Below are positions 1,450 through 30,422 of a stretch of DNA of 64,000 bases, in pieces. Position numbers and translations under genes: made by a program. Origin of the DNA: Octopus sinensis (lineage: Eukaryota); NCBI RefSeq assembly GCF_006345805.1, contig NC_043015.1, positions 28,706,001 through 28,770,000 on the forward strand, written 5' to 3'. The notes beneath the pieces are model-generated. The model worked only from the letters and a program-made list of their open reading frames with translations. It searched no databases and had not been told where the DNA came from. The first letter of the stretch is position 1. Every line of letters starts with the position of its first letter.

Positions 1450-2603
1450 ATGGACTCAGCAGAGAAACAAGACATCGGTAACCTTGCTGCTTCAATTGAT
1501 TATTTTACAAACAGTCTTTATCAAGCTGTGGCTACAGGAACCAATGAAAATGTCTTCATGTCACCATTCAGTGTTGCTACTGTTTTATCAATGGTTTATT
1601 TGGGAGCAAGACAAAACTCTGCCAAACAGTTTGAAAATGTTTTGAAGATAACATCAAATCCAGATTCTGTAGCTTTGGCTTTTAAAGAATATTTTTCACT
1701 TTTGAAAAACTCAGATAAACTTGTCACATTCAATTCAGTGAATCGTTTGTATGCCAGTGAAAAATTCCCTATTTCAGAAGACTACAAGAACAACATGGTA
1801 AAATATTTCTTTTCAGATATTGAAAATGTAGACTTCATAACAAATGCTGAGAAGACAAGAATTACTATTAATGATTGGGTTAAGAATAACACAAATGACA
1901 AAATTACCGATCTGTTACCAAGTGGAAGTGTGACACCTCAGTCGGTTCTAGTTCTTATTAATGCTGTATACTTCAAAGGAATGTGAGCTGAAAAATTCCC
2001 AGAACAAGCAACATCATCTAGAAAGTTTTATTTAAGCTCTGACAAGACTGTATCTCATGATTTTATGTATATATCTGAAGATTTTAATACAAAAATACGC
2101 AACAACTATAAAGTTGTTGAGTTACTTTATATAGGAAAAGCATTTAGTATGTTTGTAATTCTTCCCAATGAAATCAATGGTCTTGCTGCTTTAGAGAAGG
2201 AGATTAATGCTCAATTTCTCAAAGACATTGTTGACAGAAAAGGATTTAAAATGATGCTTCTAGAATTAAATATGCCAAAATTTCATTAGAGAGTAGTTTT
2301 AAGTTGGGTGATGTTTTGAAAAAGCTTGGACTCCCTGATATTTTTGATCCTCTAAAAGCTGATTTATCTGGGATGACTGGTGGTGAGAAGAATATTTATG
2401 CCAGTGAAATGTTTCATAAAGCATTTGTTGATGTTAATGAAGAAGGAACGGAAGCTGCTGCTGCAAGTGGAATGGTGGTCTCAAATTATATGTCGAGAAT
2501 TGGGATGCAATTTGATGTCAATCACCCATTCACGTTTTTAGTTGTTGATGACCGAACTAAAATGATCCATTTCATTGGTAAAGTAACAGATCCTACAACA
2601 TGA
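1450..2603 (+). pseudogene. Serpin pseudogene (young; two lesions), RCL GMVVSNY-MS
   Basis: ORF pieces 1450-1986, 2065-2289 and 2304-2603 give a full serpin. W179 TGG is TGA at 1984-1986, and there is a 1-nt deletion near 2287 (TTTCATTAG vs TTTCGTTTAG). Hinge EEGTEAAAA and FDVNHPF are intact. Confidence 0.92.
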
Positions 2604-3149
2604 GATGATATTGCCCTGTCAAAGATTTCCCTCTTAGGGAATACTACATTGTATTATGTGGAGAATGTAACTGAACAAATTTATTTAGAATGGTTTTTTT
2701 AGTAAAATGACTTAGGACATCATAATTGTAACTGTGTAGAACCAAGGTCATATCTATTCAATGATATATTATAATACCACATTAATCTAAATCAATATTA
2801 TGAATTTGTATATGCCATACATTGACAGAAAATTTTGACACTTTTTAAAGTATCCTTTCTTTGCAAGTTTACTATTTTAACAATATATCTACTGTTGCCT
2901 GTAAACGTTATTTTCTGGTTGAATGAAGTGAAATCAATATTTGTATGCTTCATATTAATAAAGTATCTCAGTAAATATTCCATTATTTTGTATGTGTTCA
3001 TTGCATCTGGCTTTTATATTCTTTGTTTTAAATTTAGACATTCGAAATTTTTAAGCCCCCGTGTTCACCCTTCGTAATTATGTCTTGGATCTTGATAAAA
3101 TAATTACATTGTTTCAATAATTGTGGCATTACAAAACTTTTACACACCC

Positions 3150-3381
3150 GCATCGGTTGTCAAGCAATGCTAGGGGGACAAACACAGACACACAAACACA
3201 CACATACATATATATATACGACAGGCTTCTTTCAGTTTCCGTCTACCAAATCCACTCACACAGCATTGGTCGGCCCGGGGCTATAGCAGAAGACATTTGC
3301 CCAAGATGCCACACAGTGGGTTGAACCCGGAACCATGTGGTTGGTTAACAAGCTACTTACCACACAGCCACACCTACGCCT
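3150..3381 (-). mobile_element. SINE family A (tRNA-head composite with internal (TA)n(TG)n), partial
   Basis: Matches the ~430-480 bp element repeated about 20 times in the window (A-box TGGCTGTGTGGT, B-box GGTTCAGTCCC). Confidence 0.8.
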
Positions 3382-3563
3382 AATATTCCATTGTTCTCAG
3401 TTCATCTATTATCTGATAATTGTTTGGAGATTTTTAACATTCATAAATCCAACAAGTTATTTTATTCTTGTTTTGTTTTTCATCTAATTTTTTTGAAGCA
3501 GAATTACTCAACGTCCTTCATACTAACTCAACATTTTGAAATATTTATACAGAAATATATATA

Positions 3564-3940
3564 GGCGCAGAGTGGCTGTGTGGTAAGTAGCTTGCTAACC
3601 AAGCACATGGTTCCGGGTTGGGCAAGTGTCTTCTGCTATAGCCCCGGGCCGACCAATGCCTTGTGGGTGGATTTGGTAGACGGAAACTGAAAGAAGCCTG
3701 TCGTATATATGTATGTGTGTGTATATGTTTGTGTGTCTGTGTTTGTCCATCTAGCATTGCTTGACAACCGATGCTGGTGTGTTTACGTCCCCGTCACTTA
3801 GCGGTTCGGCAAAAAGAGACTGATAGAATAAGTACTGGGCATACAAAGAATAATTCCCGGGGTCGATTTGCTCGACTAAAGGCGGTGCTCCAGCATGGCC
3901 GCAGTCAAATGACTGAAACAAGTAAAAGAGTAAAAGAGAG
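3564..3940 (+). mobile_element. SINE family A
   Basis: Head GGCGCAGAGTGGCTGTGTGG through tail GAAACAAGTAAAAGAG. Confidence 0.85.
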
Positions 3941-4391
3941 AGTAACTCATAATAAAAATATGCATGCATGAGTGTGTGTGTGTGTGTGTGTACGTGTACA
4001 TGCATGCATGTATTTGTGTGTGTGTATATCTCTCCTATAACATCATGATTCTCTCTCACACACTGTCTTGCAACACAAAACACTTTAAGTCTTTGGTCCT
4101 CACGACACAGAACATTGACAAATTTTTTTCTTATCTGCTTCCCCTCTGACTAAGTAAACCTGTCTCCTATTTTCCCTTCTGGCGATCTGATACATTTCCC
4201 TGCTACCACCGTTCTTCCAGTCTTTCCATGCCTGTTTCTTTTCCCTAATGACCCTGTCAACTACATTGTTCCACCACCATGTTTCCTTGGGATGAAAGGG
4301 GACTTTGCACCATCTAGAGATCTAGTCAGTAGCCTCAAATGTTTATACAAATTTATTTTGTATATTTCTCTTCATATTCTATATTCTCCAG

Positions 4392-4567
4392 ATACGACTA
4401 TATACGAAGGAACGGAAGCTGCTGCTGCAAGTGGAATGGTGGTCTCAAATTATATGTCGATAATTGGGATGCAATTTGATGTCAATCACCCATTCACGTT
4501 TTTAGTTGTTGATGACCGAACTAAAATGATCCATTTCATTGGTAAAGTAACAAACCCCACGATATAG
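4392..4567 (+). pseudogene. Internally deleted serpin: acceptor/5' UTR fused directly to RCL-C-terminus
   Basis: TTCTCCAG-ATACGACTATATACGA joins AGGAACGGAAGCT (EGTEAAAASGMVVSNYMSIIGMQFDVNHPF...NPTI*). About 1 kb of CDS is missing, with GA microhomology at 4406-4407. Serpin 3' flank follows (4568-4740, 5900-6080, 6520-6710). Confidence 0.9.
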
Positions 4568-4782: not shown

Positions 4783-4926
4783 CATTATTTACAATTGATG
4801 GATATTTGTCCTCATCTTGTTTGTTATTAACACAATGATTCGGCTGATATACCCTCCAGCCTTCATCAGGTGTCTTCGGGAAATTTCGAACCTGGGCTCT
4901 CATTCCTAAGGTATTTTGCGATTTTG

Positions 4927-5889: not shown

Positions 5890-6110
5890 GTTTTAATTTT
5901 AATCAACATTATCAATTTGTATGTGTTGTACATTTACGGAAAGATATTACACTCTTGAACGTATCTTTTATTATTTTAACAATATACTTATTGTTGCCTG
6001 TAAACGTTATTTACTTATTGAATAAAGTGAAATCAATGCTTGTAAGTTTTATTTCTGTTTATATTAATAAAGCATCTCAGTAAATATTTAATCATTATTC
6101 TCTTTTTTCT

Positions 6111-6513
6111 CTCTTTTACTCTTTTACTTGTTTCAGTCATTTGACTGCGGCTATGCTGGAGCACCGCCTTTAGTCGAGCAAATCGACCCCAGGACTTATT
6201 CTTTGTAAGCCCAGTACTTATTCTATCGGTCTCTTTTGCCGGACCGCTAAGTGACGGGGACGTAAACACACCATGCTAGGGGGACAAACACACAGACACA
6301 CAAACACACACACACACACATACATACATATACATATATATACATATATACGACAGGCTTCTTTCAGTTTCCGTCTACCAAATCCACTCACAAGGTATTG
6401 GTCGGCCCGGGGCTATAGCAGAAGACACTTGCCCAAGATGCCAGCAGTGGGACTGAACCCGGAACCATGTGGCTGGTTAGCAAGCTACTTACCACACAGC
6501 CACTCCTGCGCCT
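6111..6513 (-). mobile_element. SINE family A
   Basis: Full reverse-complement copy inserted into the 3' flank of the deleted serpin. Confidence 0.85.
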
Positions 6514-7059
6514 ATGTATGTGTTAATTGCATCTGGCTTTTATTTTCTTTTAAATATAGACATTTGAAATTCTTGAGCCCTCATATTAACCTCAGGGATT
6601 TTAGTCTTGGATCTTGATTGAAGAATTCCATTGATTCTGTAATTTTGATGTTACAAAACTTTTGAAAAGTTAACAGCCAACACACTATATACATATAAAT
6701 ACCATGCATATGTCTAATTAATGCACTGTCTAATTAATAATTATTTCAAATTTTTGCCACAAGTGCAGCTTGAGGAGTCGGTATCAAGTCGATTACACTG
6801 ACCCCAGTGTACCACCGGTATTTATTTTATTGACCCCCAACAGAATGAAATGCAAAGTCGACCTCGGTGGAATTAGAACTCAGAATGTAGTGACAGGCGA
6901 AATACCAAACATTTCCCCTGGCACGTTAATGATTCTGCTAGCTCACTGCCTTAATTGCCGAATTAGTAATGTAGCAAAGTTGGCATTCTCAAAATAACAG
7001 AGAGAATGATTAATATATATTCTGGAGTGTTCTGTCTATAAGTGGAACAAGAATCATCA

Positions 7060-7420
7060 TCATCATCGTTTAACGTCCACTTTCCATGCTAGCATGGATT
7101 GGACAATTTGACTGAGGTCTGGTGAACCAGATGGCTGCACGAGGCTCCAATCTGATCTGCCAAAGTTTCTACAGCTGGATGCCCTTCCTAATGCCAACCA
7201 CTCCGAGAGTGTAGTGGGTACTCTTACATGCCACTGGCACAAGGGCCAGTCAAGTGGTACTGGCAACGGCCATGCTCAAATAGTGTTTTTTACGTGCCAC
7301 CTACACAGGTGCCAGTCCAGCAGCACTGGTAACGACCTTGCTTGAATGTTTTTTCATGTGCCAGTAAGGGCAACGCTGGCAACAATCACACTCAAAGGGT
7401 GCTTTTTACGTGCCGCCGGA
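7060..7420 (-). mobile_element. SINE family C ((GAT)n tail, internal ~58-bp VNTR)
   Basis: (CAT)n-CGTTTAACGTCC...GCTAGCATGG...GATGCCCTTCCTAATGCCAACCACTCC motif shared by about 12 copies in the window. Confidence 0.75.
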
Positions 7421-9498: not shown

Positions 9499-10784
9499 TA
9501 TTATTTCTGGTTCATCACACATTATACGCCGAGATCGTTAATTAGTCTACCGTACACATTCTGGAGTCAACTGCAGTCTACGTGGTCGTCGGCAGAACTT
9601 CTTTTCTACTTTATGCTGCAGTTAACTTCTATTTTGCGCTATAGAAATTTTAAAACAAAAATGTTTCTCCCATTTTAACTCTATCAGCAAGGAACGAAAC
9701 TCGACATACTAATTACTTCACATTCATTGCCACGTCGCTCGAACTTTCCTCGCAAAGTCTCTTCATTATCGACGACATTCCATAGTTTTGTCATGCATTA
9801 TTTGAAAGTCAAATCACGGCAAAACTTCACCATGTAGCAGATTAAATTCTTTTTTTTTTTTCACTTCGTCTTTTTAGATAAAATAAGACAAGTTATTCAC
9901 ATTAACCGAATGTTTTGTATGAAATAAAATAATGGAAATTATTTATTATTAGCGTGTTCATTTTCGAAAACTTTCATTCTTTAAAAAACTTGGCTGACAT
10001 CAAAATCTAGATATGAGTCAAAGAGAAAACCCCTACGTGGTCAATAGACCAGCCAAATCTTCCTAAAATCATATCCTACCTTGAAAAATAAGAAAACGGT
10101 TAATTTCTGTATCAATCTAATAGGAGTGTCTGGGATAGCTATTTCTTTATTACCCACAAGGGGCTAAACACAGAGGGGACAAACAAGGACAGACATAGGT
10201 ATTCAGTCCATTACATCGACACCAGTGCGTAACTGGTACTTAATTTATCGACCCCGAAAGGATAAAAGGCAAAGTCGACCTTGGCGGAATTTGAACCCAG
10301 AACGTATCGCTGACGAAATACCGCTAAGCATTTCGCCCGTCGTGCTAACTTTTCTGCCAGCGAATCGGTTACTCCCTAGTTTTGTGGTGTTGGCAGTCGG
10401 TGTTATAGGATGTGATGAGCTAAGTGGTGCACTGGTGATAGATGAAGTGGGCGGAAGACTGCAGAATGCATGCGCAGCAGGAGTTTGTCAAGCAGGACAG
10501 TTCCAACATAGACGGGAAAGCGATAAGACGTGTAGAATTCGTGAAAGAGACCGCTGATTTCGAAGAGGTAAGGCCTTTTGTATTTCTTTCTCCCGTTGCT
10601 TCTTTTTCTGTTGTCTTCTTCATCCATCACACTACAAGTTTAATACCCGGCCACCAGAACAAGAAGAAAAAAGTTAACGAATCTGGAAAACAAAATTTGC
10701 GTAAACGAAACGGAGAGGAGGAGAGGACTTTCGGAAAATTCACACAATCCGATTTTTTCCCTCATAACTTTCAGGAGCCAATGG

Positions 10785-11632
10785 GGCAATGTTTCGTTTG
10801 TAGTAGCACGCTTGTAGCACGTTTCCGTCGATTTCCTCCGTCGATTTCCGTAAAAAAACATTTGAAGTAATGAGAACGAAAGAGACGAAGAGGAAGCGAT
10901 TTTATGACGAGGAAATTTCTTTTGAAGCTATGAAAGCATTGATGTACACGTGTGTGTGTGTTTGATGCGGTGTGGGAGACAGACAGTATGTTGTGTAAGT
11001 GAAGTGCTTCTGTTAGTGTGTGTGAAGAGACAGAGAGAGAGTAATGTGTGAAAGAGAGAGATAACTGAAATTTTTTACTCGATGTATGTATATATGTATG
11101 TATGTATGTATGTATGGCCGATTCAGTGTAATTTTTTACACATACTTACACACACACACACATACATAGATACATACACACACATACATACATGCAGACA
11201 TACATATACACATACACCGAGTAAAAAATTACTGAATCGGCCATACATACACACACACATACATACACACACACATACATAGATACATACACACACACAC
11301 ATACATGCAGCCATAAATCGAGTAAAAAATTTCAGTTATCTCTCTCTTTCACACATTACTCTCTCTGTCTCTTCACACACACTAACAGAAGCACTTCACT
11401 TACACAACATACTGTCTGTCTCCCACACCCCATCAAACACACACACACACGTACATCAATGCTTTCATAGCTTCAAAAGAAATTTCCTCGTCATAAAATC
11501 GCTTCCTCTTAGTCTCTTTCGCTCTCATTACTTCAAATGTTCCCGCAAAGCCATATGTAAAAAAAATAAAAGTTTTTTACAGAAATCGACGGAAACGTGC
11601 TACAAGCGTGCTACTACAAACGACACATTGCC
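10785..11632. mobile_element. Foldback/MITE-like element with ~300-bp imperfect terminal inverted repeats
   Basis: GGCAATGTTTCGTTTGTAGTAG... (10785-11085) mirrors ...CTACTACAAACGACACATTGCC (11319-11632); interior is (CATA)n with inverted sub-repeats. Confidence 0.8.
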
Positions 11633-11996
11633 GAAAAGGGATATCTTTTAATCAAATTTTATATAAATACCTTTCAAACAGCATAGATTAAGATTATAAA
11701 GAAATTTCTCGTGGAAAAATTTTTAAGGAGCAGGGAGAGGAGTTTCCGATCAAGAAGACCACATAAGTTTGAATTTCTCCCTTTTGACTGGGTTTTCCCG
11801 ATTGTTTTTCACCACAACCTTCGAAATGATGGGAAACATCTTGTTATGAAAAAATGGTTTGGAAAATTTATGATTTTTTTTTTTTACTCCTCATCCCCTT
11901 TAATGATTATACCAGTGGGCCACACGTGTGCTCCATTGGTGGGATGTGAGCATCAACAAAAAAATGTTAATTTAAATGTTTACCCCACCTGAATTG

Positions 11997-12513
11997 AGGC
12001 GGCGTGTGTGTAAGAAAACAAAAGAGCACGTAGTTGCGCTACATCCTGTTACAGGCACCACTACGGAATTAGCTGTCAGGAGGAAAGTAAAAGAAAGTGT
12101 GACTTCAATCTGACGTCACTTGTTTGTTTCCGTAGAACTTATCAAATTAAAAAATGCAAAGTTAATATATTTTCTGAAATTGCAAATTATTTAGAATATA
12201 AAAATATAATTTTCAACTGAGAGAATTTAATGAAATATAAAACAAATGCTTGTGTGTAAGGCGGCGTGTGTGTAAGAAAACAAAAGAGCACGTAGTTGCG
12301 CTACATCCTGTTACAGGCACCACTACGGAATTAGCTGTCAGGAGGAAAGTAAAAGAAAGTGTGACTTCAATCTGACGTCACTTGTTTGTTTCCGTAGAAC
12401 TTATCAAATTAAAAAATGCAAAGTTAATATATTTTCTGAAATTGCAAATTATTTAGAATATAAAAATATAATTTTCAACTGAGAGAATTTAATGAAATAT
12501 AAAACAAATGCTT
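11997..12513. repeat. 262-bp direct tandem duplication present only in unit 1
   Basis: AGGCGGCGTGTGTGTAAG starts at 11997 and 12259; unit 2 has a single copy (19927-20180). Confidence 0.9.
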
Positions 12514-12542
12514 TGTAGATACTTCTATTCTGTAACGTTTCA

Positions 12543-13465
12543 AATGCATGGGTATAGATGTTGAATTTGTTCCAATAACTTTCCAAAGATTTCGTCCTTA
12601 AATTCATAATGCCACATGAATTCAATGAGATGGGATTGAAGTAAATTTCGGGCTGTTCCATTTTCTCTTTTGTTACGATTCTTTACATGCTTCCATAAAC
12701 ATTCTATGTGGTTGGTTGTGGCAAATGTTACCGGATCAACAAAATTTATTGCCGGTGGCACATAAAATACACCAATCTGACCGTGGCCGTTGCCAGCCTC
12801 GCCTGGCACCTGTGCAGGTGGCACGTAAAAAGCACCCACTACACTCACGGAGTGGTTGGCGTTAGGAAGGGCATCCAGCTGTAGAAACATTGCCAGATTA
12901 GACTGGAGCCTGGTGCAGCCTTCTGGCTTCCCAGAACCCCGGTCGAACCGTCCAACCCATGCTAGCATGGAGAACGGACGTTAAACGATGATGATGATGA
13001 TGATGATGATTCACAGTCAAATGCCTATATCCTAGCTGATTGAGCGTATTATACGAACGCCAGAGGTTAGAAATTACAGTTGTACCAGGCTATATACGCT
13101 CTTGTATAATTTCTAAAAGAGTGTCCGCAGTCCGATCTTCCACTGCCACCAAATACCATCTTCTAGTATCCCTTTCCAAAGCACCAAAAACCCACTGCGT
13201 TTTAACCTGATGGCCAACATTATATTTTCTTCTAACAAACGCTCTTTCATCTATCTCTACAATTCAGTTTGGCCCTCCGAGCTTAATGTTTTGTGCAACA
13301 TAATATTCTGCACATATATCACAGCAAAAATTTCTCCAATCTATACGGCATTCCTGGGCTATTCCCTTTGCTAAATCTTCTTTTGCCCAATAATATAAAA
13401 TATCAATAATCTGCTCGCACTTTAACTTACTATTCTCTAGAAATGTTCCTTGAAGGATGTAGCCA
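12543..13465 (-). mobile_element. Merlin (IS1595/ISXO2-like DDE) transposase remnant, copy 1
   Basis: Minus strand: ...KLGGPN*IVEIDERAFVRRKYNVG...WVFGALERDTRR...TLLEIIQERI*PGTTVISNLWRSY...GYRHLTVNH[SINE]INFVDPVTFATTNHIECLWKHVK...HLIEFMW; two stops and a SINE C insertion at 12749-13011. Confidence 0.88.
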
Positions 13466-14036
13466 AAAAAAATTTGTCGGATGGCGTGATATGGTCATGT
13501 GGAAGGCCTTGCAGAAAAATGGTTTCAATTAGAAAAGGAGGATCTATTTCTTTTGAACGGCAGTTTTCAACACAATTTCTGGCTCTCTTGAGAAAATTGT
13601 AATTTGTAAGTTTAACGTAGTTTAATTTTTCAGATTTTAACCAATCAATGGCCTCTACTCAACACTGTTCATGAATTATTTCACCATGGTTAACAGCAGA
13701 TACAACCTGCGAGAACCTTCTGTACCAAGTAACCGGCTCTGCATAGTAGCCACAGCTTCACGCATGACATGTGCCTCAACTGGCTCTGCATTGCATTCTT
13801 CTAACGTCCTATTATAGACTCTTTCAATGCTCTGTACTTATCGCACACGCATACATCCACGTTTCTGCACACACATTATGTATACATGACGGCCTGTCTA
13901 TTATTATATATACATGACACACACACACAGACACACATGTTAACCTATCAATAAAATCTTTCTCTTAAACATTCTACTGGTTGTGTCTCTCTTTTCCTGC
14001 TGGCATTCATACTCATTCATCCTTTTTCCTATTTAT

Positions 14037-14421
14037 TGTAATCGACCGTGCGGCGTACTAAAGGAGACATTCTCGTCACCTCTCCTTCACACGGTCATGT
14101 GGTGTGTGCACGATTTGAATATAAAGGCACCTACCTTCTCTTCCTCGTGATGGAGACCCTTCTGTGGTAGCTAATCCTTCGACACAGCTCCAACCCGAAC
14201 ACTAAAGATAGCAGCTGCTCACCCAGACCCTTCGCCACCATCCTCACACGTCTTGTCATTTGGACGACCCACGTTGGAAAGGCCCAATTGACTGCTGCCT
14301 GCGCACGCCTGACAGCAGCCCTTTCCGGTTGCCCCAGCTTCCGGTCAACGCACCCAGCTGCTGACGTCATCCCACAGGTCATTCTACAAACTAAATATTA
14401 ACCATTGAGTCTAGGTTTACA
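14037..14421 (+). mobile_element. Solo-LTR-like segment (copy at 21684-22068)
   Basis: TGTAA...TTACA termini, 385 bp, GC-richer than flanks, AATATAAA at ~14119; no target duplication seen. Confidence 0.35.
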
Positions 14422-14967
14422 GGATCCGGTCTAGCTTGGTATTACACTAATTAGTTCAACATCACCTCCAGGCACATTAAGGCCTTTTTTGAGGATGTCA
14501 TTTTGTTGCAAGTATTTGACCAGGCTCTCAGCAGGTGGAGTATATCATTGTACTTGATACCTTATCTTACCATATATGCAAAAAATGAAAACTAAACCTG
14601 CTCCATTCAAATTTGTCTCTGAAATGCAAACATGGTTAAGTTCCAACATCATCTTATAAATGAAACTTTTAAGATATGTGCCAAATATCAGATAAATATT
14701 GGAGAAAAAAATGGTTATATTAATTAATCATATAAATTTTTAATTATTTTAAAAACTGTTTAAAACACATTAACTCTGTGTTATGTTAAAAATATGTTCA
14801 TGTAAAAGTTAAAATTAGAGTTTGATCAGAAGAGATTTCAGACTTTGCTTTTATAGATGTCTCTAATTACAGTAATGTCTAATAAAATATTTTGAAATGT
14901 TTGCAAGAATTTATTCTGTATATTTTCTCTTCATATTCTATATTCTCCAGATACTATCGTATACAAT

Positions 14968-16934: not shown

Positions 16935-17480
16935 CATCATGCGTCCGCTTTCCGTGCTAGCATGGGTTGGACGGTTCAAACTGGGGTCTGGAAAGCCAGA
17001 AGGCTGCATCAGGCCCAGTCTGATCTGGCAGTTTTTCTATGGCTGGATGCCCTTCCTAACGCCAACCACTCCGTGAGTGTAGTGGGTGCTTTTTACGTGC
17101 CACCAGCACAGGTGTCAGATGGGGCTGGCAAACGGCCACGGTCGGATGGTGCTTTTTACGTGCCACCGGCACGAGGGCCAGGCGGGGCTGGCAACGGACT
17201 AAAAAATAAATGGTGCAAGCCCACCCAGGAGCAGTCAAATTTTCTAGAGTACAGTTGTTGCTGTATAGTTAAGAAGCCCTTCCTAATGCCAACCACTCCG
17301 TGAGTGTAGTGGGTGCTTTTTCCGAGGCCAGACGGGGTGGCGCTGGCAACGGCCACGTTCGGATGGTTCTCTTACATACCACCGGCACTGGTATCACAGC
17401 TGCAATTTCCATTGATGTTCATCAATTTCGATTTTGATTTTCACTTGCCTCAACAGGTCTTCACAAGCAGAGTTTTGTGT
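16935..17480 (-). mobile_element. SINE family C plus adjoining module (copy at 24590-25110)
   Basis: (CAT)n tail and VNTR units TTTTACGTGCCACC. Confidence 0.75.
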
Positions 17481-18237
17481 CCCTAGAAGGAAAGGTATGC
17501 ATAAGTGGATTGGCTACATCCCATGTTGAGGTCATGGCTTATGGTCTTACTTGGCCTCCCAGATCTTCTCATGCACAGCATACTTAAATATATATTTCTT
17601 TACTACCCACAAGGGGCTAAACACAGAATGGACAAACAAGGACAGACAAAGGGATTAAGTCGATTACATCGACCCCAGTGCGTAACTGGTACTTAATTTA
17701 TCGACCACGAAAGGATGAAAGGCAAACTCGACCATGGCGGAATTTGAACTCACAACGTATCGCTGACGAAATACCGCTAAGCATTTCGCCCGTCGTGCTA
17801 ACTTTTCTGCCAGCGAATCGGTTACTACCTAGTTTTGTGGTGTTGGCAGTCGGTGTTATAGGATGTGATGAGCTAAGTGGTGCACTGGTGATAGATGAAG
17901 TGGGCGGAAGACTGCAGAATGCATGCGCAGCAGGAGTTTGTCAAGCAGGACAGTTCCAACATAGACGGGAAAGCGTTAAGACGTGTAGAATTCGTGAAAG
18001 AGACCGCTGATTTCGAAGAGGTAAGGCCTTTTGTATTTCTTTCTCCCGTTGCTTCTTTTTCTGTTGTCTTCTTCATCCATCACACTACAAGTTTAATACC
18101 TGGCCACCAGAACAAGAAGAAAAAAGTTAACGAATCTGGAAAACAAAATTTGCGTAAACGAAACGGAGAGGAGGAGAGGACTTTCGGAAAATTCACACAA
18201 TCCGATTTTTTCCCTCATAACTTTCAGGAGCCAATGG

Positions 18238-19630
18238 GGCAATGTTTCGTTTGTAGTAGCAAAAAATTTCAGTTATGTCTCTCTTTCACACATTACTCTC
18301 TCTGTCTCTTCACACACACTAACAGAAGCACTTCACTTACACAACATACTGTCTGTCTCCCACACCCCATCAAACACACACACACACGTACATCAATGCT
18401 TTCATAGCTTCAAAAGAAATTTCCTCGTCATAAAATCGCTTCCTCTTAGTCTCTTTCGCTCTCATTACTTCAAATGTTCCCGCAAAGCCATATGTAAAAA
18501 AATAAAAGTTTTTTACGGAAATCGACGGAAACGTGCTACAAGCGTGCTACTACAAACGAAACATTGCCATTTCGGCAATGTTTCGTTTGTAGTAGCACGC
18601 TTGTAGCACGTTTCCGTCGATTTCCTCCGTCGATTGTCGATTTCCTCCGTCGATTTCCGTAAAAAAACATTTGAAGTAATGAGAACGAAAGAGACGAAGA
18701 GGAAGCGATTTTATGACGAGGAAATTTCTTTTGAAGCTATGAAAGCATTGATGTACACGTGTGTGTGTGTTTGATGCGGTGTGGGAGACAGACAGTATGT
18801 TGTGTAAGTGAAGTGCTTCTGTTAGTGTGTGTGAAGAGACAGAGAGAGAGTAATGTGTGAAAGAGAGAGATAACTGAAATTTTTTACTCGATGTATGTAT
18901 ATATGTATGTGTGTGTGTATGTATCTATGTATGTATGTGTAAGTATGTATGTATGTATGTATGGCCGATTCAGTGTAATTTTTTACACATACTTACACAC
19001 ACACACACATACATAGATACATACACACACATACATACATGCAGACATACATATACACATACACCGAGTAAAAAATTAGACTGAATCGGCCATAAATACA
19101 TACATACATACACATACACAGATACATAGATACATACACACATACATACATACATTCAGACATACATATACACATACACCGAGTAAAAAATTACTGAATC
19201 GGCCATACATACACACACACATACATAGATACATGCGCACATACATACACACACACATACATACACACACACATACATAGATACATACACACACACACAT
19301 ACATGCAGCCATAAATCGAGTAAAAAATTTCAGTTATCTCTCTCTTTCACACATTACTCTCTCTGTCTCTTCACACACACTAACAGAAGCACTTCACTTA
19401 CACAACATACTGTCTGTCTCCCACACCCCATCAAACACACACACACACGTACATCAATGCTTTCATAGCTTCAAAAGAAATTTCCTCGTCATAAAATCGC
19501 TTCCTCTTAGTCTCTTTCGCTCTCATTACTTCAAATGTTCCCGCAAAGCCATATGTAAAAAAAATAAAAGTTTTTTACAGAAATCGACGGAAACGTGCTA
19601 CAAGCGTGCTACTACAAACGAAACATTGCC
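18238..19630. mobile_element. Rearranged foldback element in unit 2 (stub-R-L-interior-R)
   Basis: 24-bp left stub (18238-18261), extra right arm (18261-18568), ATTTC, then a complete element at 18574-19630 flanked by TTTC on both sides. Confidence 0.8.
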
Positions 19631-20209
19631 TTTCTGGTGGAAAAATTTTTTAGGGAGCAGGGAGAGGAGTTTCCGATCAAGAAGACCACATAAGTTGGAA
19701 TTTCTCCCTTTTGACTGGGTTTTCCCGATTGTTTTTCACCGCAACCTTCGAAATGATGGGAAACATCTTGTTATGAAAAAATGGTTTGGAAAATTTATGA
19801 TTTTTTTTTTTTTTACTCCTCATCCCCTTTAATGATTATACCAGTGGGCCACACGTGTGCTCCATTGGTGGGATATGAGCATCAACAAAAAAATGTTAAT
19901 TTAAATGTTTACCCCACCTGAATTGAGGCGGCGTGTGTGTAAGAAAACAAAAGAGCACGTAGTTGCGCTACATCCTGTTACAGGCACCACTACGGAATTA
20001 GCTGTCAGGAGGAAAGTAAAAGAAAGTGTGACTTCAATCTGACGTCACTTGTTTGTTTCCGTAGAACTTATCAAATTAAAAAATGCAAAGTTAATATATT
20101 TTCTGAAATTGCAAATTATTTAGAAGATAAAAATATAATTTTCAACTGAGAGAATTTAATGAAATATAAAACAAATGCTTTGTAGATACTTCTATTCTGT
20201 AACGTTTCA

Positions 20210-21132
20210 AATGCATGGGTATAGATGTTGAATTTGTTCCAATAACTTTCCAAAGATTTCGTCCTTAAATTCATAATGCCACATGAATTCAATGAGATGG
20301 GATTGAAGTAAATTTCGGGCTGTTCCATTTTCTCTTTTGTTACGATTCTTTACATGCTTCCATAAACATTCTATGTGGTTGGTTGTGGCAAATGTTACCG
20401 GATCAACAAAATTTATTGCCGGTGGCACATAAAATACACCAATCTGACCGTGGCCGTTGCCAGCCTCGCCTGGCACCTGTGCAGGTGGCACGTAAAAAGC
20501 ACCCACTACACTCACGGAGTGGTTGGCGTTAGGAAGGGCATCCAGCTGTAGAAACATTGCCAGATTAGACTGGAGCCTGGTGCAGCCTTCTGGCTTCCCA
20601 GAACCCCGGTCGAACCGTCCAACCCATGCTAGCATGGAGAACGGACGTTAAACGATGATGATGATGATGATGATGATTCACAGTCAAATGCCTATATCCT
20701 AGCTGATTGAGCGTATTATACGAACGCCAGAGGTTAGAAATTACAGTTGTACCAGGCTATATACGCTCTTGTATAATTTCTAAAAGAGTGTCCGCAGTCC
20801 GATCTTCCACTGCCACCAAATACCATCTTCTAGTATCCCTTTCCAAAGCACCAAAAACCCACTGCGTTTTAACCTGATGGCCAACATTATATTTTCTTCT
20901 AACAAACGCTCTTTCATCTATCTCTACAATTCAGTTTGGCCCTCCGAGCTTAATGTTTTGTGCAACATAATATTCTGCACATATATCACAGCAAAAATTT
21001 CTCCAATCTATACGGCATTCCTGGGCTATTCCCTTTGCTAAATCTTCTTTTGCCCAATAATATAAAATATCAATAATCTGCTCGCACTTTAACTTACTAT
21101 TCTCTAGAAATGTTCCTTGAAGGATGTAGCCA
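20210..21132 (-). mobile_element. Merlin transposase remnant, copy 2 (duplicated)
   Basis: Essentially identical to 12543-13465, including the SINE at 20416-20678. Confidence 0.88.
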
Positions 21133-22615
21133 AAAAAAATTTGTCGGATGGCGTGATATGGTCATGTGGAAGGCCTTGCAGAAAAAGAGGATCTTTTCCT
21201 TTTGAACGGCAGTTTTCAACACAATTTCTGGCTCTCTTGAGAAAATTGTAATTTGTAAGTTTAACGTAGTTTAATTTTTCAGATTTTAACCAATCAATGG
21301 CCTCTACTCAACACTGTTCAGGAATTATTTCACCATGGTTAACAGCAGATACAACCTGCGAGAACCTTCTGTACCAAGTAACCGGCTCTGCATAGTAGCC
21401 ACAGCTTCACGCATGACATGTGCCTCAACTGGCTCTGCATTGCATTCTTCTAACGTCCTATTATAGACTCTTTCAATGCTCTGTACTTATCGCACACGCA
21501 TACATCCACGTTTCTGCACACACATTATGTATACATGACGGCCTGTCTATTATTATATATACATGACACACACACAGACACACATGTTAACCTATCAATA
21601 AAATCTTTCTCTTAAACATTCTACTGGTTGTGTCTCTCTTTTCCTGCTGGCATTCATACTCATTCATCCTTTTTCCTATTTATTGTAATCGACCGTGCGG
21701 CGTACTAAAGGAGACATTCTCGTCACCTCTCCTTCACACGGTCATGTGGTGTGTGCACGATTTGAATATAAAGGCACCTACCTTCTCTTCCTCGTGATGG
21801 AGACCCTTCTGTGGTAGCTAATCCTTCGACACAGCTCCAACCCGAACACTAAAGATAGCAGCTGCTCACCCAGACCCTTCGCCACCATCCTCACACGTCT
21901 TGTCATTTGGACGACCCACGTTGGAAAGGCCCAATTGACTGCTGCCTGCGCACGCCTGACAGCAGCCCCTTCCGGTTGCCCCAGCTTCCGGTCAACGCAC
22001 CCAGCTGCTGACGTCATCCCACAGGTCATTCTACAAACTAAATATTAACCATTGAGTCTAGGTTTACAGGATCCGGTCTAGCTTGGTATTACACTAATTA
22101 GTTCAACATCACCTCCAGGCACATTTAGGCCTTTTTTGAGGATGTCATTTTGTTGCAAGTATTTGACCAGGCTCTCAGCAGGTGGAGTATATCATTGTAC
22201 TTGATACCTTATCTTACCATATATGCAAAAAATGAAAACTAAACCTGCTCCATTCAAATTTGTCTCTGAAATGCAAACATGGTTAAGTTCCAACATCATC
22301 TTATAAATGAAACTTTTAAGATATGTGCCAAATATCAGATAAATATTGGAGAAAAAAATGGTTATATTAATTAATCATATAAATTTTTAATTGTTTTAAA
22401 AACTGTTTAAAACACATTAACTCTGTGTTATGTTAAGAAATATGTTCATGTAAAAGTTAAAATTAGAGTTTGTTCAGAAGAGATTTCAGACTTTGCTTTT
22501 ATAGATGTCTCTAATTACAGTAATGTCTAATAAAATATTTTGAAATGTTTGCAAGAATTTATTCTGTATATTTTCTCTTCATATTCTATATTCTCCAGAT
22601 ACTATCGTATACAAT

Positions 22616-23779
22616 ATGGACTCAGCAAAGAAACAAGACATCAGTAACCTTGCCGCTTCAATTGATTATTTTACAAACAGTCTTTATCAAGCTGTGGCTA
22701 CAGGAATCAATGAAAATGTCTTCATGTCACCATTCAGTGTTGCTACTGTTTTATCAATGGTTTATTTGGGAGCAAGACAAAACTCTTCCAAACAGTTTGA
22801 AAATGTTTTGAAGATAACATCAAATCCAGATTCTGTAGCTTTAGCTTTTAAAGAATATTTTTCACTTTTGAAAAACTCAGATAAACTCGTCACATCCAAT
22901 TTAGTGAATCGTTTGTGTGCCAATGAAAAATTCCCTATTTCAGAAGACTACAAGAACAACATGGTAAAATATTTCTTTTCAGATATTGAAAATGTAGACT
23001 TTATAACAAATGCTGAGAAGACAAGAATAACTATTAATGATTGGGTTAAGAATAACACAAATAACAAAATTACTGATCTGTTACCAAGTGGAAGTTTGAC
23101 ACCTCAATCGGTTCTAGTTCTTATTAATGCTGTATACTTCAAAGGAACGTGGGCTGAAACATTCGGAAAAAAAGCAACATCATCTAGAAAGTTTTATTTA
23201 AGCTCTGACAAGACTGTATCTCATGATTTTATGTATCTATCTGAAGGTTTTAATACAAAAATAAGTGACAACTATAAAGTGGTTGAGTTACCTTATATAG
23301 GGAAAGCATTTAGTATGTTTGTAATTCTTCCCAATGAAATCAATGGTCTTGCTGCTTTAGAGAAGGAGATTAATGCTCAATTTCTCAAAGACATTGTTGA
23401 CAGAAAAGGATTTCAAATGATGTGTCTAAAATTACATATGCCAAAATTTTGTTTAGAGAGTAGTTTTCAGTTGGGTGATGTTTTGAAAAAGCTTGGACTC
23501 TCTGATATTTTTGATCCTCTAAAAGCTGATTTATCTGGAATGACTGGTGCTGAGAAGAATATTTATGCCAGTGAAATGTTTCATAAAGCATTTGTTGATG
23601 TTAATGAAGAAGGAACGGAAGCTGCAGCTGCAACTGGAATAGTCATGACCTTCGCGTCAGCACAAATTTTTATAAATCGTATAGATTTTGATGTCAATCA
23701 TCCATTCACATTTTTAATTGTTGACAACCGAACTAAAATGATCCATTTCATTGGTAAAGTAACAAATCCTTCAACATAA
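22616..23779 (+). CDS. Intracellular serpin, RCL TGIVMTFA-SA, predicted P1 Ala
   Basis: 387-aa intact ORF with all serpin motifs; acceptor AG at 22597-22598. Confidence 0.96.
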   Translation: MDSAKKQDISNLAASIDYFTNSLYQAVATGINENVFMSPFSVATVLSMVYLGARQNSSKQFENVLKITSNPDSVALAFKEYFSLLKNSDKLVTSNLVNRLCANEKFPISEDYKNNMVKYFFSDIENVDFITNAEKTRITINDWVKNNTNNKITDLLPSGSLTPQSVLVLINAVYFKGTWAETFGKKATSSRKFYLSSDKTVSHDFMYLSEGFNTKISDNYKVVELPYIGKAFSMFVILPNEINGLAALEKEINAQFLKDIVDRKGFQMMCLKLHMPKFCLESSFQLGDVLKKLGLSDIFDPLKADLSGMTGAEKNIYASEMFHKAFVDVNEEGTEAAAATGIVMTFASAQIFINRIDFDVNHPFTFLIVDNRTKMIHFIGKVTNPST

Positions 23780-24556
23780 GCTGATATTGCCCTGTCAAAG
23801 ATTTCCCTCTTATGGAATACTACATTGTATTATGTGGAGAATGTAACTGAGCAAATTTATTTAGAATTGTTTTTAGTAAAATGACTGAGGTCATTACAGT
23901 TGTAATCGTGTAGAACCAAGGTCATATCTATTCAATGATATATTATAATACCACATTAATCTAAATCAATATTATGAATTTGTATATGCCATACATTGAC
24001 AGAAAAATTTGACACTTTTTAAAGTATCCTTTCTTAGCAAGTTTACTATTTTAACAATATATCTACTGTTGCCTGTAAACGTTATTTTCTGGTTGAATAA
24101 AGTGAAATCAATATTTGTATGTTTCATATTAATAAAGTATCTCAGTAAATATTCCATTATTATGTATGTGTTGATTGCATCTGGCTTTTATATTCTTTGT
24201 TTTAAATTTAGACATTCGAAATTTTTGAGCGCCCGTGTTCACCCTTTGTAATTATGTCTTGGATCTTGATAAACTAATTACATTGTTTCAATAATTGCGG
24301 CATTACAAAACTTTTGGAAAGTTAACAGCCAATGTACCATATACATATATATTCTCAAGGTAGCAAAGAGAATATATACCGTCTATTCTAGAATGTTCTA
24401 TCTATAAGTAGAACAAGAATCAGTGAAGAAATTCCCATATACTTTTCTATTTTTGTTGCTGTTACTGAAATTCCAGTGATGGGGCTTCATTTAATATTTA
24501 CAAACCAACATTTTCATTTTTAAAAAATATTTGAAAATATTAAGCAAGATGCAAAC

Positions 24557-24590
<34 letters not shown>

Positions 24591-25486
24591 TGTTTAGCGT
24601 CCGCTTTCCGTGCTAGCATGGGTTGGACGGTTCAAACTGGGGTCTGGGAAGCCAGAAGGCTGCACCAGGCCCAGTCTGGTCTGGCAGTATTTCTACGGCT
24701 GGATGCCCTTCCTAACGCCAACCACTCCGTGAGTGTAGTGGGTACTTTTTACGTGCCACCGGCACAGGTGTCAGACAGGACTGGCAAACGGCCACCAGCA
24801 CGAGGGCCAGGCGGGGCTGGCAACAGACTAAAAAATAAATGGTACAAGCCCACCCAGGAGCAGTCAAATTTTCTAGGGTACAGGTGTTGCTGTATAGTTA
24901 AGAAGCCCTTCCTAATGCCAACCACTCTGTGAGTGTAGTGGGTGCTTTTTACGAGGGCAGTCGGGGCGGCGCTGGCAACGGCCACGTTCGGATGGTTCTC
25001 TTACATACCACCGGCACTGGTATCACAGCTGCAATTTCCATTGATGTTCATCGATTTCGATTTTGATTTTCACTTGCCTCAACAGGTCTTCGCAAGCAGA
25101 GTTTTGTGTCCCTAGAAGGAAAGATATGCATAAGTGGACTGGCTACATCCCATGTAGAGGTCACAGCTTATGGTCCCACTTGTCCTGCCAGGTCTTCTCA
25201 TGCACAGCATACTTAAATATATATACATATCCATCTGGATATTATATGTAAAGTAAATACATCAGAAAAGGCAAAACTTCTGTTGTATTCATGCAGAAAT
25301 AATATCACATATGGACATGCTTGTTTAAAAACACAATTTATATCAGGCACATGAAGATTGTCCTAGCAGTGGTTGGTGAGAATGCTAAATGTGTTCATGT
25401 CCTGTTAGACATTGTTTTAATAATGGAAGGCAAGGTTTATGATATTGGAGGAATATCATCTCCTTCCATCATCTTTTTGTTCTTTA

Positions 25487-26545: not shown

Positions 26546-26651
26546 TCATGGTCTGCATGGCCCCTTGGACAAGTGTCTTCTACTATAGCCCGGGCCAACC
26601 AAAGCCTTGTGAGTGGATTTGGTAGACGGAAACTTAAAGAAGCCTGTCGTA

Positions 26652-26713
<62 letters not shown>

Positions 26714-27043
26714 TGTGTGTTTTTGTGTGTCTGTGTTTGTCCCCCTAGCATTGCTTGACAACCGATGCTGGTGTGTTTATGTCCCCGTCACTTAGCGGTT
26801 CGGCAAAATAGACCGATAGAATAAGTACTGGGCTTACAAAAAGAATAAGTCCCGGGGTCGAGTTGCTCGATTAAAGGCGGTGCTCCAGCATGGCTGCAGT
26901 CAAATGACTGAAACAAGTAAAAGAGTAAAAGAGTAAAGAGAGAGCAACCTCACTGAGGAAACAAAGAAAAAAGGGGGAATTAAGCAGCAAAAGATGGGGT
27001 GAGAAGGAGTAAGAGGTTTTACACCCCAGACCAAATGGCATGT

Positions 27044-28100: not shown

Positions 28101-28129
28101 AATGAATGTGGTTCTAGTCATCACTACAC

Positions 28130-28171
28130 CCATCACCATCATCATCATTGTCGTTGTCATCGTCATCATCA

Positions 28172-28202
<31 letters not shown>

Positions 28203-28300
28203 CTTCTTCTTCTTCTTCTTCTTCTTCTTCTTCTTCTTCTTCTTCTTCTTCTCTTTCTTCTTCTTTTTTCTTCTTCTTTTTCTTCTTCTTCTTCCTCTGC
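28130..28300. repeat. (CAT)n/(CTT)n trinucleotide microsatellite
   Basis: Long (CTT)n run from ~28173. Confidence 0.95.
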
Positions 28301-29267
28301 TCTTCTTCCATTTTCTATCTTACAGTTATAAAAGGTGGCAATGCCTATGACCCTTTACATGGCTTCCATGACACGGATAGGAGGGAAGGAGAGAGAAAGG
28401 CACCATTCCAACTGAAGATCTCACCCAAATGTTTGCTAAAGAAGTAGCAAACACACTATAAGGTATCTGGTTTATCTGCCTCTCGGTTCATGTTAGGCAA
28501 GAAGTCGAAAATGTTTTTGGCCCACGATAATCCATGGACCCTATGTCACGCATGTGTAAGATTTCATTAAAATTGGTTGGGTGGATCTCAAGTTATAACG
28601 ACATAATAGACACACATCCTGTATTTCATATAAAGATTACTTAGACAAATAGTAGCAAAACCACAGACATATATGGTATGTATTTAGATATACATGTATG
28701 GAATATGTGCTGGCTGTTAACTTTTCAAAAGTTTTGTAAGACCACGATTATTGAATCAATTCTTTAATCAAGATCCAAGACTATATTACCAGAGATTAAC
28801 AAGGGGGCTCAAAAAATTGAAATATCTAAATTTAAAACAAAGCTAATAAAAGCCAGATGCAATTAACACATGCATTAAAATGGAGTATTTACTGAGATGC
28901 TTTATTAATATAAACAGAAACAAAACTTACAGGCATTGATTTCTCTTTATTTAACCAGTAAATAATGTTTACAGGCAACAATAAGTATATTCTTAAAATA
29001 GTAAACTTGCTAAAAAAAGACACTTTAAAAAGTGTCATATTTTTCTGTCAATATATGGCAAGTACAAATTCATAATATTGATTTAGATTAATGTGGTATT
29101 ATAATATATCATTGAATAGATATGACCTTGGTTCTACATAGTTACAATTATAATGTCCTCAGTCATTTTACTAAAAACAATTCTAAATAAATTTGTTCAG
29201 TTACATTCTCCACATAATACAATGTAGTATTCCATAAGAGGGAAATCTTTGACAGGGCAATATCATC

Positions 29268-30422
29268 TTATGTTTTAGGATTTGTTACTTTACCAATGAA
29301 ATGGATCATTTTAGTTCGGTTATCAACAATCAAAAATGTGAATGGGTGATTGACATAAAATTCCATCCCAATTTGTACTGACATTGCCATCGCGACCATT
29401 CCACTTGCAGCAGCAGCTTCCGTTCCTTCTTCATTAACATTAACAAATGCTTTATGAAACATTTCACTGGCATAAATATTCTTCTCACCACCAGTCATTC
29501 CAGATAAATCAGCTTTTTGAGGATCAAAAATATCAGAGAGTCCAAGCTTTTTCAAAACTTCACCCAACTGAAAACAACTCTCTAAACGAAATTTTGGCAT
29601 ATGTAATTCTAGATACATCATTTCAAATCCTTTTCTGTTTATAATATCTTTGAGAAATTGAGCATTAATCTCCTTCTCTAAAGCAGCAAGACCATTGATT
29701 TCATTGGGAAGAATTACAAACATACTAAATGCTTTTCCAATATAAGGTAACTCAACGACTTTATAGTTGTCGCTTATTTTGGTATTAAAATCTTCAGATT
29801 TATACATAAAATCATGAGTTACAGTCTTGTCAGAGCTTAAATAAAACTTTCTAGATTTTGTTGCATGTTCTGGGAATTTTTTAGCCCACGTTCCTTTAAA
29901 GTACACAGCATTAATAAGAACTAGAATTGATTGAGGTGTCAAACTTCCACTTGGTAACAGATCAGTAATTTTGTTATTTGTGTTATTCTTAACCCAATCA
30001 TTAATAGTTCTTCTTGTCTTCTCAGCATTTATTATGAAGTCTACATTTTCAATATCTGAAAAGAAATATTTTACCATGTTGTTCTTGTAGTCTTCAGAAA
30101 AAGGGAATATTTCACTGGCATACAAACGATTCACTGAATTGAATGTGACAAGTTTATCTGAGTTTTTCAAAAGTGAAAAATATTCTTTAAAAGCCAAAGC
30201 TACAGAATCTGGATTTGATGTTATCTTCAAAACATTTTCAAACTGTTTGGCAGAGTTTTGTCTTGCTCCCAAATAAACCATTGATAAAACTGTAGCAACA
30301 CTTAATGGTGACATGAAGACATTTTCATTGATTCTTGTAGCCACAGCTTGATAAAGACTGTTTGCAAAATAATCAATTGAAGCAGCAAGGTTACTGATGG
30401 CTTGTTTCTTTGCTGAGTCCAT
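29268..30422 (-). CDS. Intracellular serpin, RCL SGMVAMAM-SV, predicted P1 Met
   Basis: 384-aa intact ORF on the minus strand with all serpin motifs; acceptor TTCTCCAG just upstream of ATG; conserved 3' flank at 28680-29267. Confidence 0.96.
   Translation of the reverse strand: MDSAKKQAISNLAASIDYFANSLYQAVATRINENVFMSPLSVATVLSMVYLGARQNSAKQFENVLKITSNPDSVALAFKEYFSLLKNSDKLVTFNSVNRLYASEIFPFSEDYKNNMVKYFFSDIENVDFIINAEKTRRTINDWVKNNTNNKITDLLPSGSLTPQSILVLINAVYFKGTWAKKFPEHATKSRKFYLSSDKTVTHDFMYKSEDFNTKISDNYKVVELPYIGKAFSMFVILPNEINGLAALEKEINAQFLKDIINRKGFEMMYLELHMPKFRLESCFQLGEVLKKLGLSDIFDPQKADLSGMTGGEKNIYASEMFHKAFVNVNEEGTEAAAASGMVAMAMSVQIGMEFYVNHPFTFLIVDNRTKMIHFIGKVTNPKT

Follow-up and report, generated by a model that had tools for sequence, protein, structure and literature searches.

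A 64,000-nt stretch of the Octopus sinensis genome (CM016877.1, approximately positions 28,706,001 to 28,770,000, without N gaps; hereafter, the window) contains part of a serpin array that spans at least 200 kb, with its members arranged both in tandem and in inverted orientation. We consider it probable that this locus is a large array of inhibitory serpins, which has been diversified by duplication, exchange between paralogs, and selection at the surface that contacts the protease. A reading-frame listing combined with tblastn identified three intact serpin bodies in the window (C2, C3, and C4), and exact-protein look-ups placed more than 12 additional bodies near it on the same chromosome. 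The intact bodies and their landmarks are as follows.

14951-16128, + strand: C2 exon, intact body of 386 amino acids (aa) with its ATG at 14968
15958-15984, + strand: C2 hinge EEGTEAAAA, with the FDVNHPF/FYVNHPF motif at 16036
15994-16035, + strand: C2 bait loop FAMDLSGYFGMPMD, predicted P1 Leu (P1-P1′ L-S)
22599-23779, + strand: C3 exon, intact body of 387 aa in the frame 22616-23779
23606-23632, + strand: C3 hinge EEGTEAAAA, with the FDVNHPF/FYVNHPF motif at 23687
23642-23686, + strand: C3 bait loop VMTFASAQIFINRID, predicted P1 Ala (P1-P1′ A-S)
29268-30430, - strand: C4 exon 2, linker DTT followed by an intact 384-aa body (30422-29268)
29432-29406, - strand: C4 hinge EEGTEAAAA, with the FDVNHPF/FYVNHPF motif at 29360-29340
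29396-29361, - strand: C4 bait loop VAMAMSVQIGME, predicted P1 Met (P1-P1′ M-S)
32601-32533, - strand: coding part of C4 exon 1, MAEVISCLIFLIALSCVSQQTAS, ending in a phase-1 donor (G/GTATAT)

The P1 residue was assigned by counting 17 residues from the first Glu of the hinge. An earlier note on this DNA had quoted the hinge, the FDVNHPF/FYVNHPF motifs, and four bait loops, all of which were found in frame at the coordinates listed here and, for a fourth copy termed C1, below. Its P1-P1′ pairs (Y-M, L-S, A-S, and M-S) were reproduced by the same count, and the C2 Leu falls on the SERPINB3/SERPINB4 alignment column that we take to be the P1 position in those proteins. The note had also described four full-length copies, all in frame, but C1 carries a nonsense codon and a 1-bp deletion, and only C2, C3, and C4 are intact; the positions 1450, 14968, 22616, and 29268, which it gave for the loops, are ends of the reading frames. 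Three pieces were additional to its inventory, namely, a degraded copy at 904-17, a remnant at 4392-4567, and the signal-peptide exon of C4. By the 17-residue rule, P1 is occupied across the array by Tyr, Leu, Ala, Met, Phe, or Cys, and never by Arg or Lys, which suggests chymotrypsin- or elastase-like rather than trypsin-like targets.

Profile matches, a canonical hinge, and a predicted native fold support the assignment of the window bodies to the inhibitory type of serpins. C2, C3, and C4 scored 362 to 373 bits against Pfam PF00079 (cut-off 27; E ~1e-108), covering positions 4-370 of the 370-position profile. The EEGTEAAAA hinge is invariant in all window copies and in nine array paralogs, and it fits the inhibitory consensus, i.e., P17 Glu, P15 Gly, P14 Thr/Ser, and small residues at P12 to P9. 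The AlphaFold model of C2 (predicted local distance difference test [pLDDT], 92; predicted TM-score [pTM], 0.90) is disordered only at residues 337-350, which correspond to the bait loop and have values below 50, and Foldseek returned TM-scores of 0.87 to 0.91 to native MENT, SERPINB3 (SCCA1), antithrombin, and SERPINB1. By identity, the nearest matches are O. sinensis, O. vulgaris, and O. bimaculoides models named “leukocyte elastase inhibitor-like” (86 to 100%); Argonauta comes next at 71%, and no protein from outside the cephalopods exceeds ∼43%. Judged from these identities, the high-identity family is confined to octopods. The NCBI name “leukocyte elastase inhibitor” is an automatic label. 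Orthology to SERPINB1 or membership in clade B was not borne out, given the presence of leader exons and identities of only 32 to 35% to SERPINB1 and SERPINB3, which are not above that to antithrombin.

The differences between paralogs are concentrated in a few segments. Nonsynonymous (dN) and synonymous (dS) divergence was compared among nine intact O. sinensis bodies, comprising the three in the window, four from the neighboring locus L001, and the bodies P0002 and P0003. Two variable patches were located in C2 coordinates by sliding-window counts, and their secondary structure was read from the AlphaFold model; we assigned the strand names according to standard serpin topology.

Scaffold: dS 0.084, dN 0.023, dN/dS 0.28
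Bait loop, 18 codons: dS 0.45, dN 0.59, dN/dS 1.3
Patch 1, aa 178-190: dS 0.035, dN 0.183, dN/dS 5.2
Patch 2, aa 261-280: dS 0.059, dN 0.114, dN/dS 1.9
15499-15537, + strand: patch 1 in C2, WAEIFSERATSS, end of s3A and loop to s4C
15748-15807, + strand: patch 2 in C2, IDRKGFEGLFLELRMPKFRL, strand s2C

The loop dN of 0.59 exceeds the scaffold dS of 0.084, as is characteristic of clusters with hypervariable reactive-center loops (RCLs). Tree-free counts of minimum changes yielded 46 nonsynonymous (N) to 5 synonymous (S) changes in the 18 loop codons versus 56:48 in 336 scaffold codons (Fisher p = 2.7e-6), in agreement with the earlier proposal that the loop is the most variable segment and is enriched in amino acid-changing substitutions. 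The value of dN/dS in the RCL, which had been named as a check, does exceed 1, but only modestly, since synonymous divergence is raised in the loop too. The scaffold had been described as near-invariant; this likeness between copies reflects very recent duplication and exchange and not simply strong constraint. The loop is not the sole hot spot that it had been taken for: both patches vary as well (27 N:2 S together), and a minor peak of variation occurs at aa 201-215, in s3C of the model. In the modeled structure of C2, the patches and the minor peak are placed in sheet C, at the pole bearing the bait loop. From serpin topology, the patches may thus be exosites touching the protease.

As for gene structure, a single exon carries the entire serpin body in each copy, behind a conserved phase-1 acceptor and with no hinge intron. 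Every ATG is immediately preceded, in this order, by a polypyrimidine tract, CAG, and an in-frame linker with the consensus DT(I/T)(V/I/K)Y(N/D), which reads DTIVYN in C2 and is shortened in frame to DTT in C4. Poly(A) signals are found 317 to 362 nt past each stop (in C2, at ∼319 and ∼354 nt). C4 has its own leader exon with a phase-1 donor, separated from exon 2 by an intron at 32532-30431, and is therefore probably a two-exon gene encoding a secreted serpin of 410 aa; the signal-peptide call was made by eye. Its leader is 100% identical, by tblastn, to that of the O. vulgaris protein P0006, and hydrophobic leader exons are carried by C4, P0005, and P0129. Searches with tblastn and two DNA motifs revealed no other leader exon in the window, a single one in L001, and none in the loci L004 and L005, with the 2.7-kb gap between L001 and L005 being unsampled. 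DNA-level analysis of L004 and L005 covered 1.36-kb segments only. Decay is evident in other parts of the window.

1433-2603, + strand: C1, pseudogene with acceptor AG at 1431-1432 and ATG at 1450
2439-2465, + strand: C1 hinge EEGTEAAAA, with the FDVNHPF/FYVNHPF motif at 2511
2475-2510, + strand: C1 bait loop VVSNYMSRIGMQ, predicted P1 Tyr (P1-P1′ Y-M)
17-904, - strand: degraded serpin body, recovered as tblastn pieces in three frames and extending past the window start
4392-4567, + strand: remnant, acceptor and linker DTTIY fused to EGTEAAAASGMVVSNYMSIIGMQFDVNHPF...NPTI-stop

Nucleotide alignment located a TGG-to-TGA change at 1984-1986 and a 1-bp deletion near 2285 in C1, whose frame ends after 178 aa; an intact twin with an identical loop (A41360/P0005) resides in L001. 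A hypothetical GT...AG interval at 1983-2263 bridges both lesions: the nonsense mutation creates GTGAGC, CTTCTAG lies at 2257-2263, and removal of the interval restores the frame, generating a 290-aa product with the junction VYFKG-IIKYAKISLESSF. Without ∼94 core residues, this product would be unable to form a serpin. In O. vulgaris, the model P0126 holds both the same VYFKG-IIKYAKISLESSF junction and the remnant sequence DTTIYEGTEAAAASGMVVSNYMSRIGMQ, and the C1 lesions thus appear to be shared with that species. Since both relics are contained in P0126, C1 and the 4392-4567 remnant are judged to predate the split between O. sinensis and O. vulgaris, and we regard C1 as an old pseudogene. The remnant has lost codons 1 to ∼331, its fusion reads into EGTEAAAASGMVVSNYMSIIGMQ...NPTI-stop, and downstream of it the sequence runs collinear with L001 42353-47229 (98% identity). 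The degraded body at 904-17 has several frameshifts and a stop in codon 3 (MD-stop-AKK), with 55 to 77% amino acid identity to the intact copies; inverted degraded copies similar to it are interspersed among the L001 bodies.

The pseudogene, the remnant, and the degraded copy are what would be expected if all copies other than C4 were exon-2-only duplicates, devoid of leader and promoter and drifting unexpressed, in which case the loop differences would be meaningless here. This account also draws on the failure to find a + strand leader exon for C1 to C3, on the P226R substitution in the ELPY motif of C2 (15643-15645, codon 226; 91% of 94 distant serpins have Pro here, as do all other paralogs), and on an N:S ratio outside the loop of the C2 lineage (10:3) that is not different from neutral. 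Against it, C2 and C3 keep frames of 386 to 387 codons, acceptors with in-frame linkers, and poly(A) signals, the scaffold dN/dS is 0.28, differences cluster in three surface segments instead of being evenly spread, and the comparable leaderless copies P0002, P0003, and P0132 are annotated as genes by NCBI. General decay of the non-C4 copies is therefore unlikely.

One indication that paralogs have exchanged sequence comes from C2 and C3. A per-100-nt mismatch profile showed that their noncoding flanks are ∼99.7% identical, with 8 mismatches in the 2.7 kb upstream and 4 in the first 500 nt of the coding sequence. Spikes occur only in the 3′ half of the latter, where the 100-nt windows of patch 1, patch 2, and the loop hold 5, 11, and 23 mismatches, respectively, plus an indel in the loop, and mismatch falls to ∼1% downstream of the stop codon. 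Given a background of ∼0.2% per lineage, the 23% divergence between the C2 and C3 loops is too great for point mutation alone. In addition, C3 has a mosaic structure. In its 5′ part it matches both P0002 and C2, and in its 3′ part, which includes the loop, it matches P0002. The differences from P0002 number 2 and 7 in these two parts, as compared with 25 and 42 to P0003, whereas patch 1 of C3 is nucleotide-identical to that of P0003. Of the informative site pairs outside the loop, 34% are incompatible by the four-gamete test, and the pairwise homoplasy index (PHI) permutation test gave p = 0.001. The proportion of synonymous differences (pS) is raised in the loop (0.34 versus 0.08), and in the C2 lineage synonymous changes (p = 0.01) as well as nonsynonymous ones (p = 1e-5) exceed the numbers expected from its flanks. 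Ohta, as cited in PMC3966226, took joint elevation of dN and dS in a variable segment as an indication of non-allelic conversion followed by selection and applied this view to serpin reactive centers. Collectively, the mosaic tract, the recombination test, and the elevated synonymous divergence of the loop argue for sequence exchange among paralogs, acting together with diversifying selection, as the process that shaped the loops.

Implicit in the earlier note was a simpler model, in which positive selection acted on point substitutions after recent duplication, without exchange. It accommodates the strong enrichment of N changes in the loop and the patches, as well as the loops of C2 and C4, which are connected through stepwise codon changes and have GCG, ATG, and TCA codons in common; moreover, loop codons for the same amino acid differ only about twice as often as those of the scaffold (0.097 versus 0.049). 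Nonetheless, to reach ∼23% in the loop next to flanks diverged by ∼0.2% per lineage, substitution would have to run at ∼50 to 100 times the neutral rate, synonymous changes are in excess too, and neither the C3 tract shared with P0003 nor the significant recombination test is accounted for. We thus give point substitution alone little credence. Another candidate, ancient loops set in a merely homogenized scaffold, is supported only in part. The codon difference is no more than about twofold; some loop types are old and occur in O. bimaculoides as well, but in the long-loop clade O. sinensis is different even from O. vulgaris.

The larger array provides the context for these copies.

10140-17595 and 17593-25224, + strand: two tandem units of ∼7.6 kb that carry C2 and C3, respectively, as delimited by self-BLAST
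28.637-28.690 Mb, orientation opposite to the window: L001, with seven additional serpin bodies
28.585 Mb: serpin body P0002
2.6 kb upstream of the window start: serpin body P0003

C2 is encoded twice on the chromosome, its inverted twin being located at 28.551 Mb, ∼170 kb off; window positions 13968-17128 and the reversed locus L002 (CM016877.1 28,550,139-28,553,299) are 100% identical over 3161 nt, an identity explained either by a very recent segmental duplication in inverted orientation or by an artifact of the assembly. That C2, C3, and the inverted twin are haplotypes or mis-joined contigs, with the loops as divergent alleles under balancing selection, would fit this perfect identity and a flank identity of 99.7% that is within the range of heterozygosity, but the window has no N gaps, self-BLAST shows that the C2 and C3 units differ by internal rearrangements, the homologous region of O. 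vulgaris has at least three tandem units, and L001 displays many more tandem bodies, all of which make this explanation very improbable.

Several observations nonetheless weigh against an exchange-driven, functional array. The within-loop dN/dS is only 1.3, and N changes exceed the neutral expectation (79% N) only modestly in a binomial test (p = 0.03). Because the limits of the patches were set after viewing the data, their p-values against the scaffold (0.006 and 0.0015) are optimistic, and against the neutral expectation p = 0.06. No donor for the unique loop of C2 or for its other unique substitutions was found among the readable copies, and exchange in C2 is thus inferred. The function of C2 is itself uncertain because P226R affects a conserved Pro, and this copy may be decaying. 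Within the window and the 13.8 kb of L005 that lie upstream of it, C1, C2, and C3 have no same-strand leader. Exact-protein look-ups retrieved no transcript contig: C2 and P0005 matched genome contigs only, and the 384-aa C4 body gave zero matches. Finally, the identical inverted twin of C2 raises the possibility that the assembly may contain false duplications.

Comparison across octopus species showed that loop diversification is uneven. The loop types VMMALSAQIGM(D/E) and VV(S/T)NYM(S/L)RIGMQ are common to O. sinensis and O. bimaculoides. The 410-aa O. vulgaris protein P0006 is the C4 orthologue, with an identical loop and a scaffold 97.3% identical (2.7% of residues differ). At the position of C2 and C3, the O. 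vulgaris locus L006 has flanks diverged by ∼2% and a loop, DIGCLMCDDYFLNCMD, that is unlike that of either copy; patch 1 is also a divergence peak there. On the basis of the loops shared between species and the unrelated loop of L006, short-loop types are old and have been maintained, whereas turnover is ongoing in the long-loop clade (C2, C3, P0002, P0003, and P0132). The earlier note took a repertoire to be diversifying here; since some types are conserved between species, this diversification is episodic, not uniform. Neither species nor loop type cleanly groups the scaffolds by identity, a pattern that fits birth-and-death evolution with exchange.

The following scheme would unite these findings in an array shaped by duplication, exchange, and selection. 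The phase-1 acceptor of each body could receive a short signal-peptide exon, and array members would be secreted and/or intracellular. As suicide substrates, they would be cleaved by the protease in the bait loop at P1-P1′, whereupon the EEGTEAAAA hinge would enter sheet A and the protease would be trapped. Specificity would be set by the loop (P1 Leu, Ala, and Met in the intact window copies) and probably also by the two sheet-C patches. Repeated tandem duplication would have built the repertoire, a very recent 7.6-kb duplication having produced C2 and C3; short-tract exchange, through either gene conversion or unequal crossing-over, would homogenize scaffolds and flanks while shuffling loop and patch modules, and selection would retain amino acid differences at the protease-contact surface. 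Some copies would decay, as exemplified by C1, the remnant, and the degraded inverted copy. Family membership, fold, gene structure, the pattern of variation, mosaicism, and conservation or turnover between species are established here, whereas inhibitory activity, P1 assignments, target proteases, expression, and secretion are all predictions of this scheme.

A further possibility concerns how the bodies acquire their leader. In L001, there is one leader exon for seven bodies: at 10001-42514 (28.647-28.680 Mb), a signal-peptide exon precedes several complete bodies in the same orientation, and the annotation joins it to three of them, giving rise to three 413-aa products recorded as isoforms X1, X3, and X4 of one gene. 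The O. bimaculoides locus L007 (10001-29819) is laid out likewise: several complete, like-oriented bodies follow one leader exon, which is joined to body 2 (P0004) by one annotation and to body 3 (P0008) by another. From these arrangements, which are known from gene models only, we tentatively propose that one promoter and signal-peptide exon are spliced, in a mutually exclusive manner, to several whole-serpin terminal exons, in a lola-like layout. Each terminal exon might then encode an entire serpin and possess a separate bait loop, exosite patches, and poly(A) site, although we hold this with some doubt. Conservation of such a layout in O. sinensis, O. vulgaris, and O. bimaculoides is conceivable rather than likely. 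Exchange among the terminal exons could, on the same uncertain footing, keep the scaffolds alike and recombine loop and patch modules. C1, C2, and C3, which retain acceptor, in-frame linker, and poly(A) signal but not a leader, could possibly be further cassettes of this kind, an assignment that we make with reserve.

An alternative RCL exon of the insect type was ruled out, as each body frame runs uninterrupted through the hinge to the stop, and the 4392-4567 segment arose by internal deletion, being a remnant in which the 5′ acceptor and linker of the body are retained. Every body contains an invariant GGTAAAGT (window 16099-16106 and 23750-23757; codons Gly-Lys-Val, 9 before the stop), which resembles a phase-1 5′ splice site and is equal in phase to the leader donor. 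The O. vulgaris models P0125 (571 aa) and P0126 (1736 aa) chain bodies via a site of the GGTAAAGT type (...MIHFI/DTIIYDMDS...). Such chaining is probably a predictor artifact, since the first body would lose strand s5B.

The array has counterparts in other animals. The rodent Serpina1 and Serpina3 (Spi-2) clusters have hypervariable reactive centers (Hill & Hastie 1987; Ohta 1994, both as cited in PMC3966226), and tandem SERPINA3 duplicates occur in woodrats (PMC12646145). The octopus array resembles the rodent clusters in its tandem paralogs with similar scaffolds and loop-focused variation, with dN and dS both raised, a pattern that has likewise been explained by gene conversion and selection. 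However, the octopus genes are not kin by descent to those of rodents (they are ∼35 to 40% identical to any vertebrate serpin), and they differ in their single-exon bodies, in two extra variable patches in sheet C, and in a part of the array that apparently shares a leader. In insect genes of the serpin-1 type, the alternatives are C-terminal RCL exons, used in a mutually exclusive manner (Manduca serpin-1, Jiang et al. 1994, as cited in PMC3966226; PpSerpin-1, PMC10513286). Common to both systems are one locus with many loop variants, forms with and without a signal peptide, and phase 1 with an “extra G,” but only the last 40 to 50 residues are alternative in insects, spliced at the hinge, whereas the octopus locus repeats the whole body of 384 to 387 residues.

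Human SERPINB3/SERPINB4, whose structures 2zv6 and 4zk0 are the closest solved ones, and SERPINB1 share with the octopus copies a length of ∼385 aa, without N- or C-terminal extensions, an ov-serpin-like hinge, and TM-scores of ∼0.9. SERPINB3 and SERPINB4 are, moreover, a young duplicate pair with different P1 residues (PMC4136820), a further likeness to the octopus copies. Unlike clade B serpins, which have no signal peptide, at least some octopus members carry a signal-peptide exon, and their identity of 32 to 35% does not indicate orthology. Expanded clusters in ticks and parasitoid wasps (PMC13116602, PMC10735303) are similar lineage-specific tandem expansions with divergent bait loops; a difference is that those clusters are linked to secretion into the host.

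We found no paper describing such serpin arrays in cephalopods. The pattern is already known from rodents, insects, and ticks, and the cephalopod case apparently is described here for the first time; the window mainly extends a textbook serpin pattern to this group. With flanks 99.7% identical around unrelated loops, it offers an unusually clean case of duplication, exchange, and selection acting together. A shared leader, if true, would be a new way of encoding serpin diversity, i.e., a whole-domain version of the insect system of alternative RCL exons. The posterior salivary (venom) gland of octopods produces expanded, gland-specific serine proteases (PMC7656900), which are plausible candidate targets of the array. 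An equally dynamic inhibitor repertoire could be the natural counterpart to such proteases, in self-protection, or could serve anti-parasite immunity; the immune, digestive, or venom self-protection roles proposed earlier, along with the protease classes concerned, are putative. The one report found on serpin expression in an octopus, on the “Serpin B10” transcript induced by Aggregata infection in O. vulgaris (PMC5736919), deals with a different gene outside this family; the reverse primer used for it has no match in the window.

No serpin pieces were detected by tblastn or self-BLAST at 33-64 kb of the window, which holds interspersed and simple repeats only, and an Rfam scan of the window gave zero matches. 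An interspersed repeat of ∼400 bp (75 to 95% identity, both orientations) occurs at 3142-3944, 6100-6520, 26553-26942, 30568-30990, and 33148-33620 and at more than 20 further window sites, up to 63404, with no Rfam family matched. Together with a second element of ∼250 bp (e.g., 7053-7315, 12750-13010, and 16912-17194), it occupies much of the window. Long AT and TATA microsatellites are located at 43909-44416 and 55582-55861, and tandem repeats of 63 to 67 bp at 49974-50290, 51502-51653, and 59840-60110. Outside the window, ∼10 to 14 kb upstream of its start, L005 contains long frames of 815 and 353 aa adjoining P0003 (125-3992, minus strand), which may belong to a transposable element.

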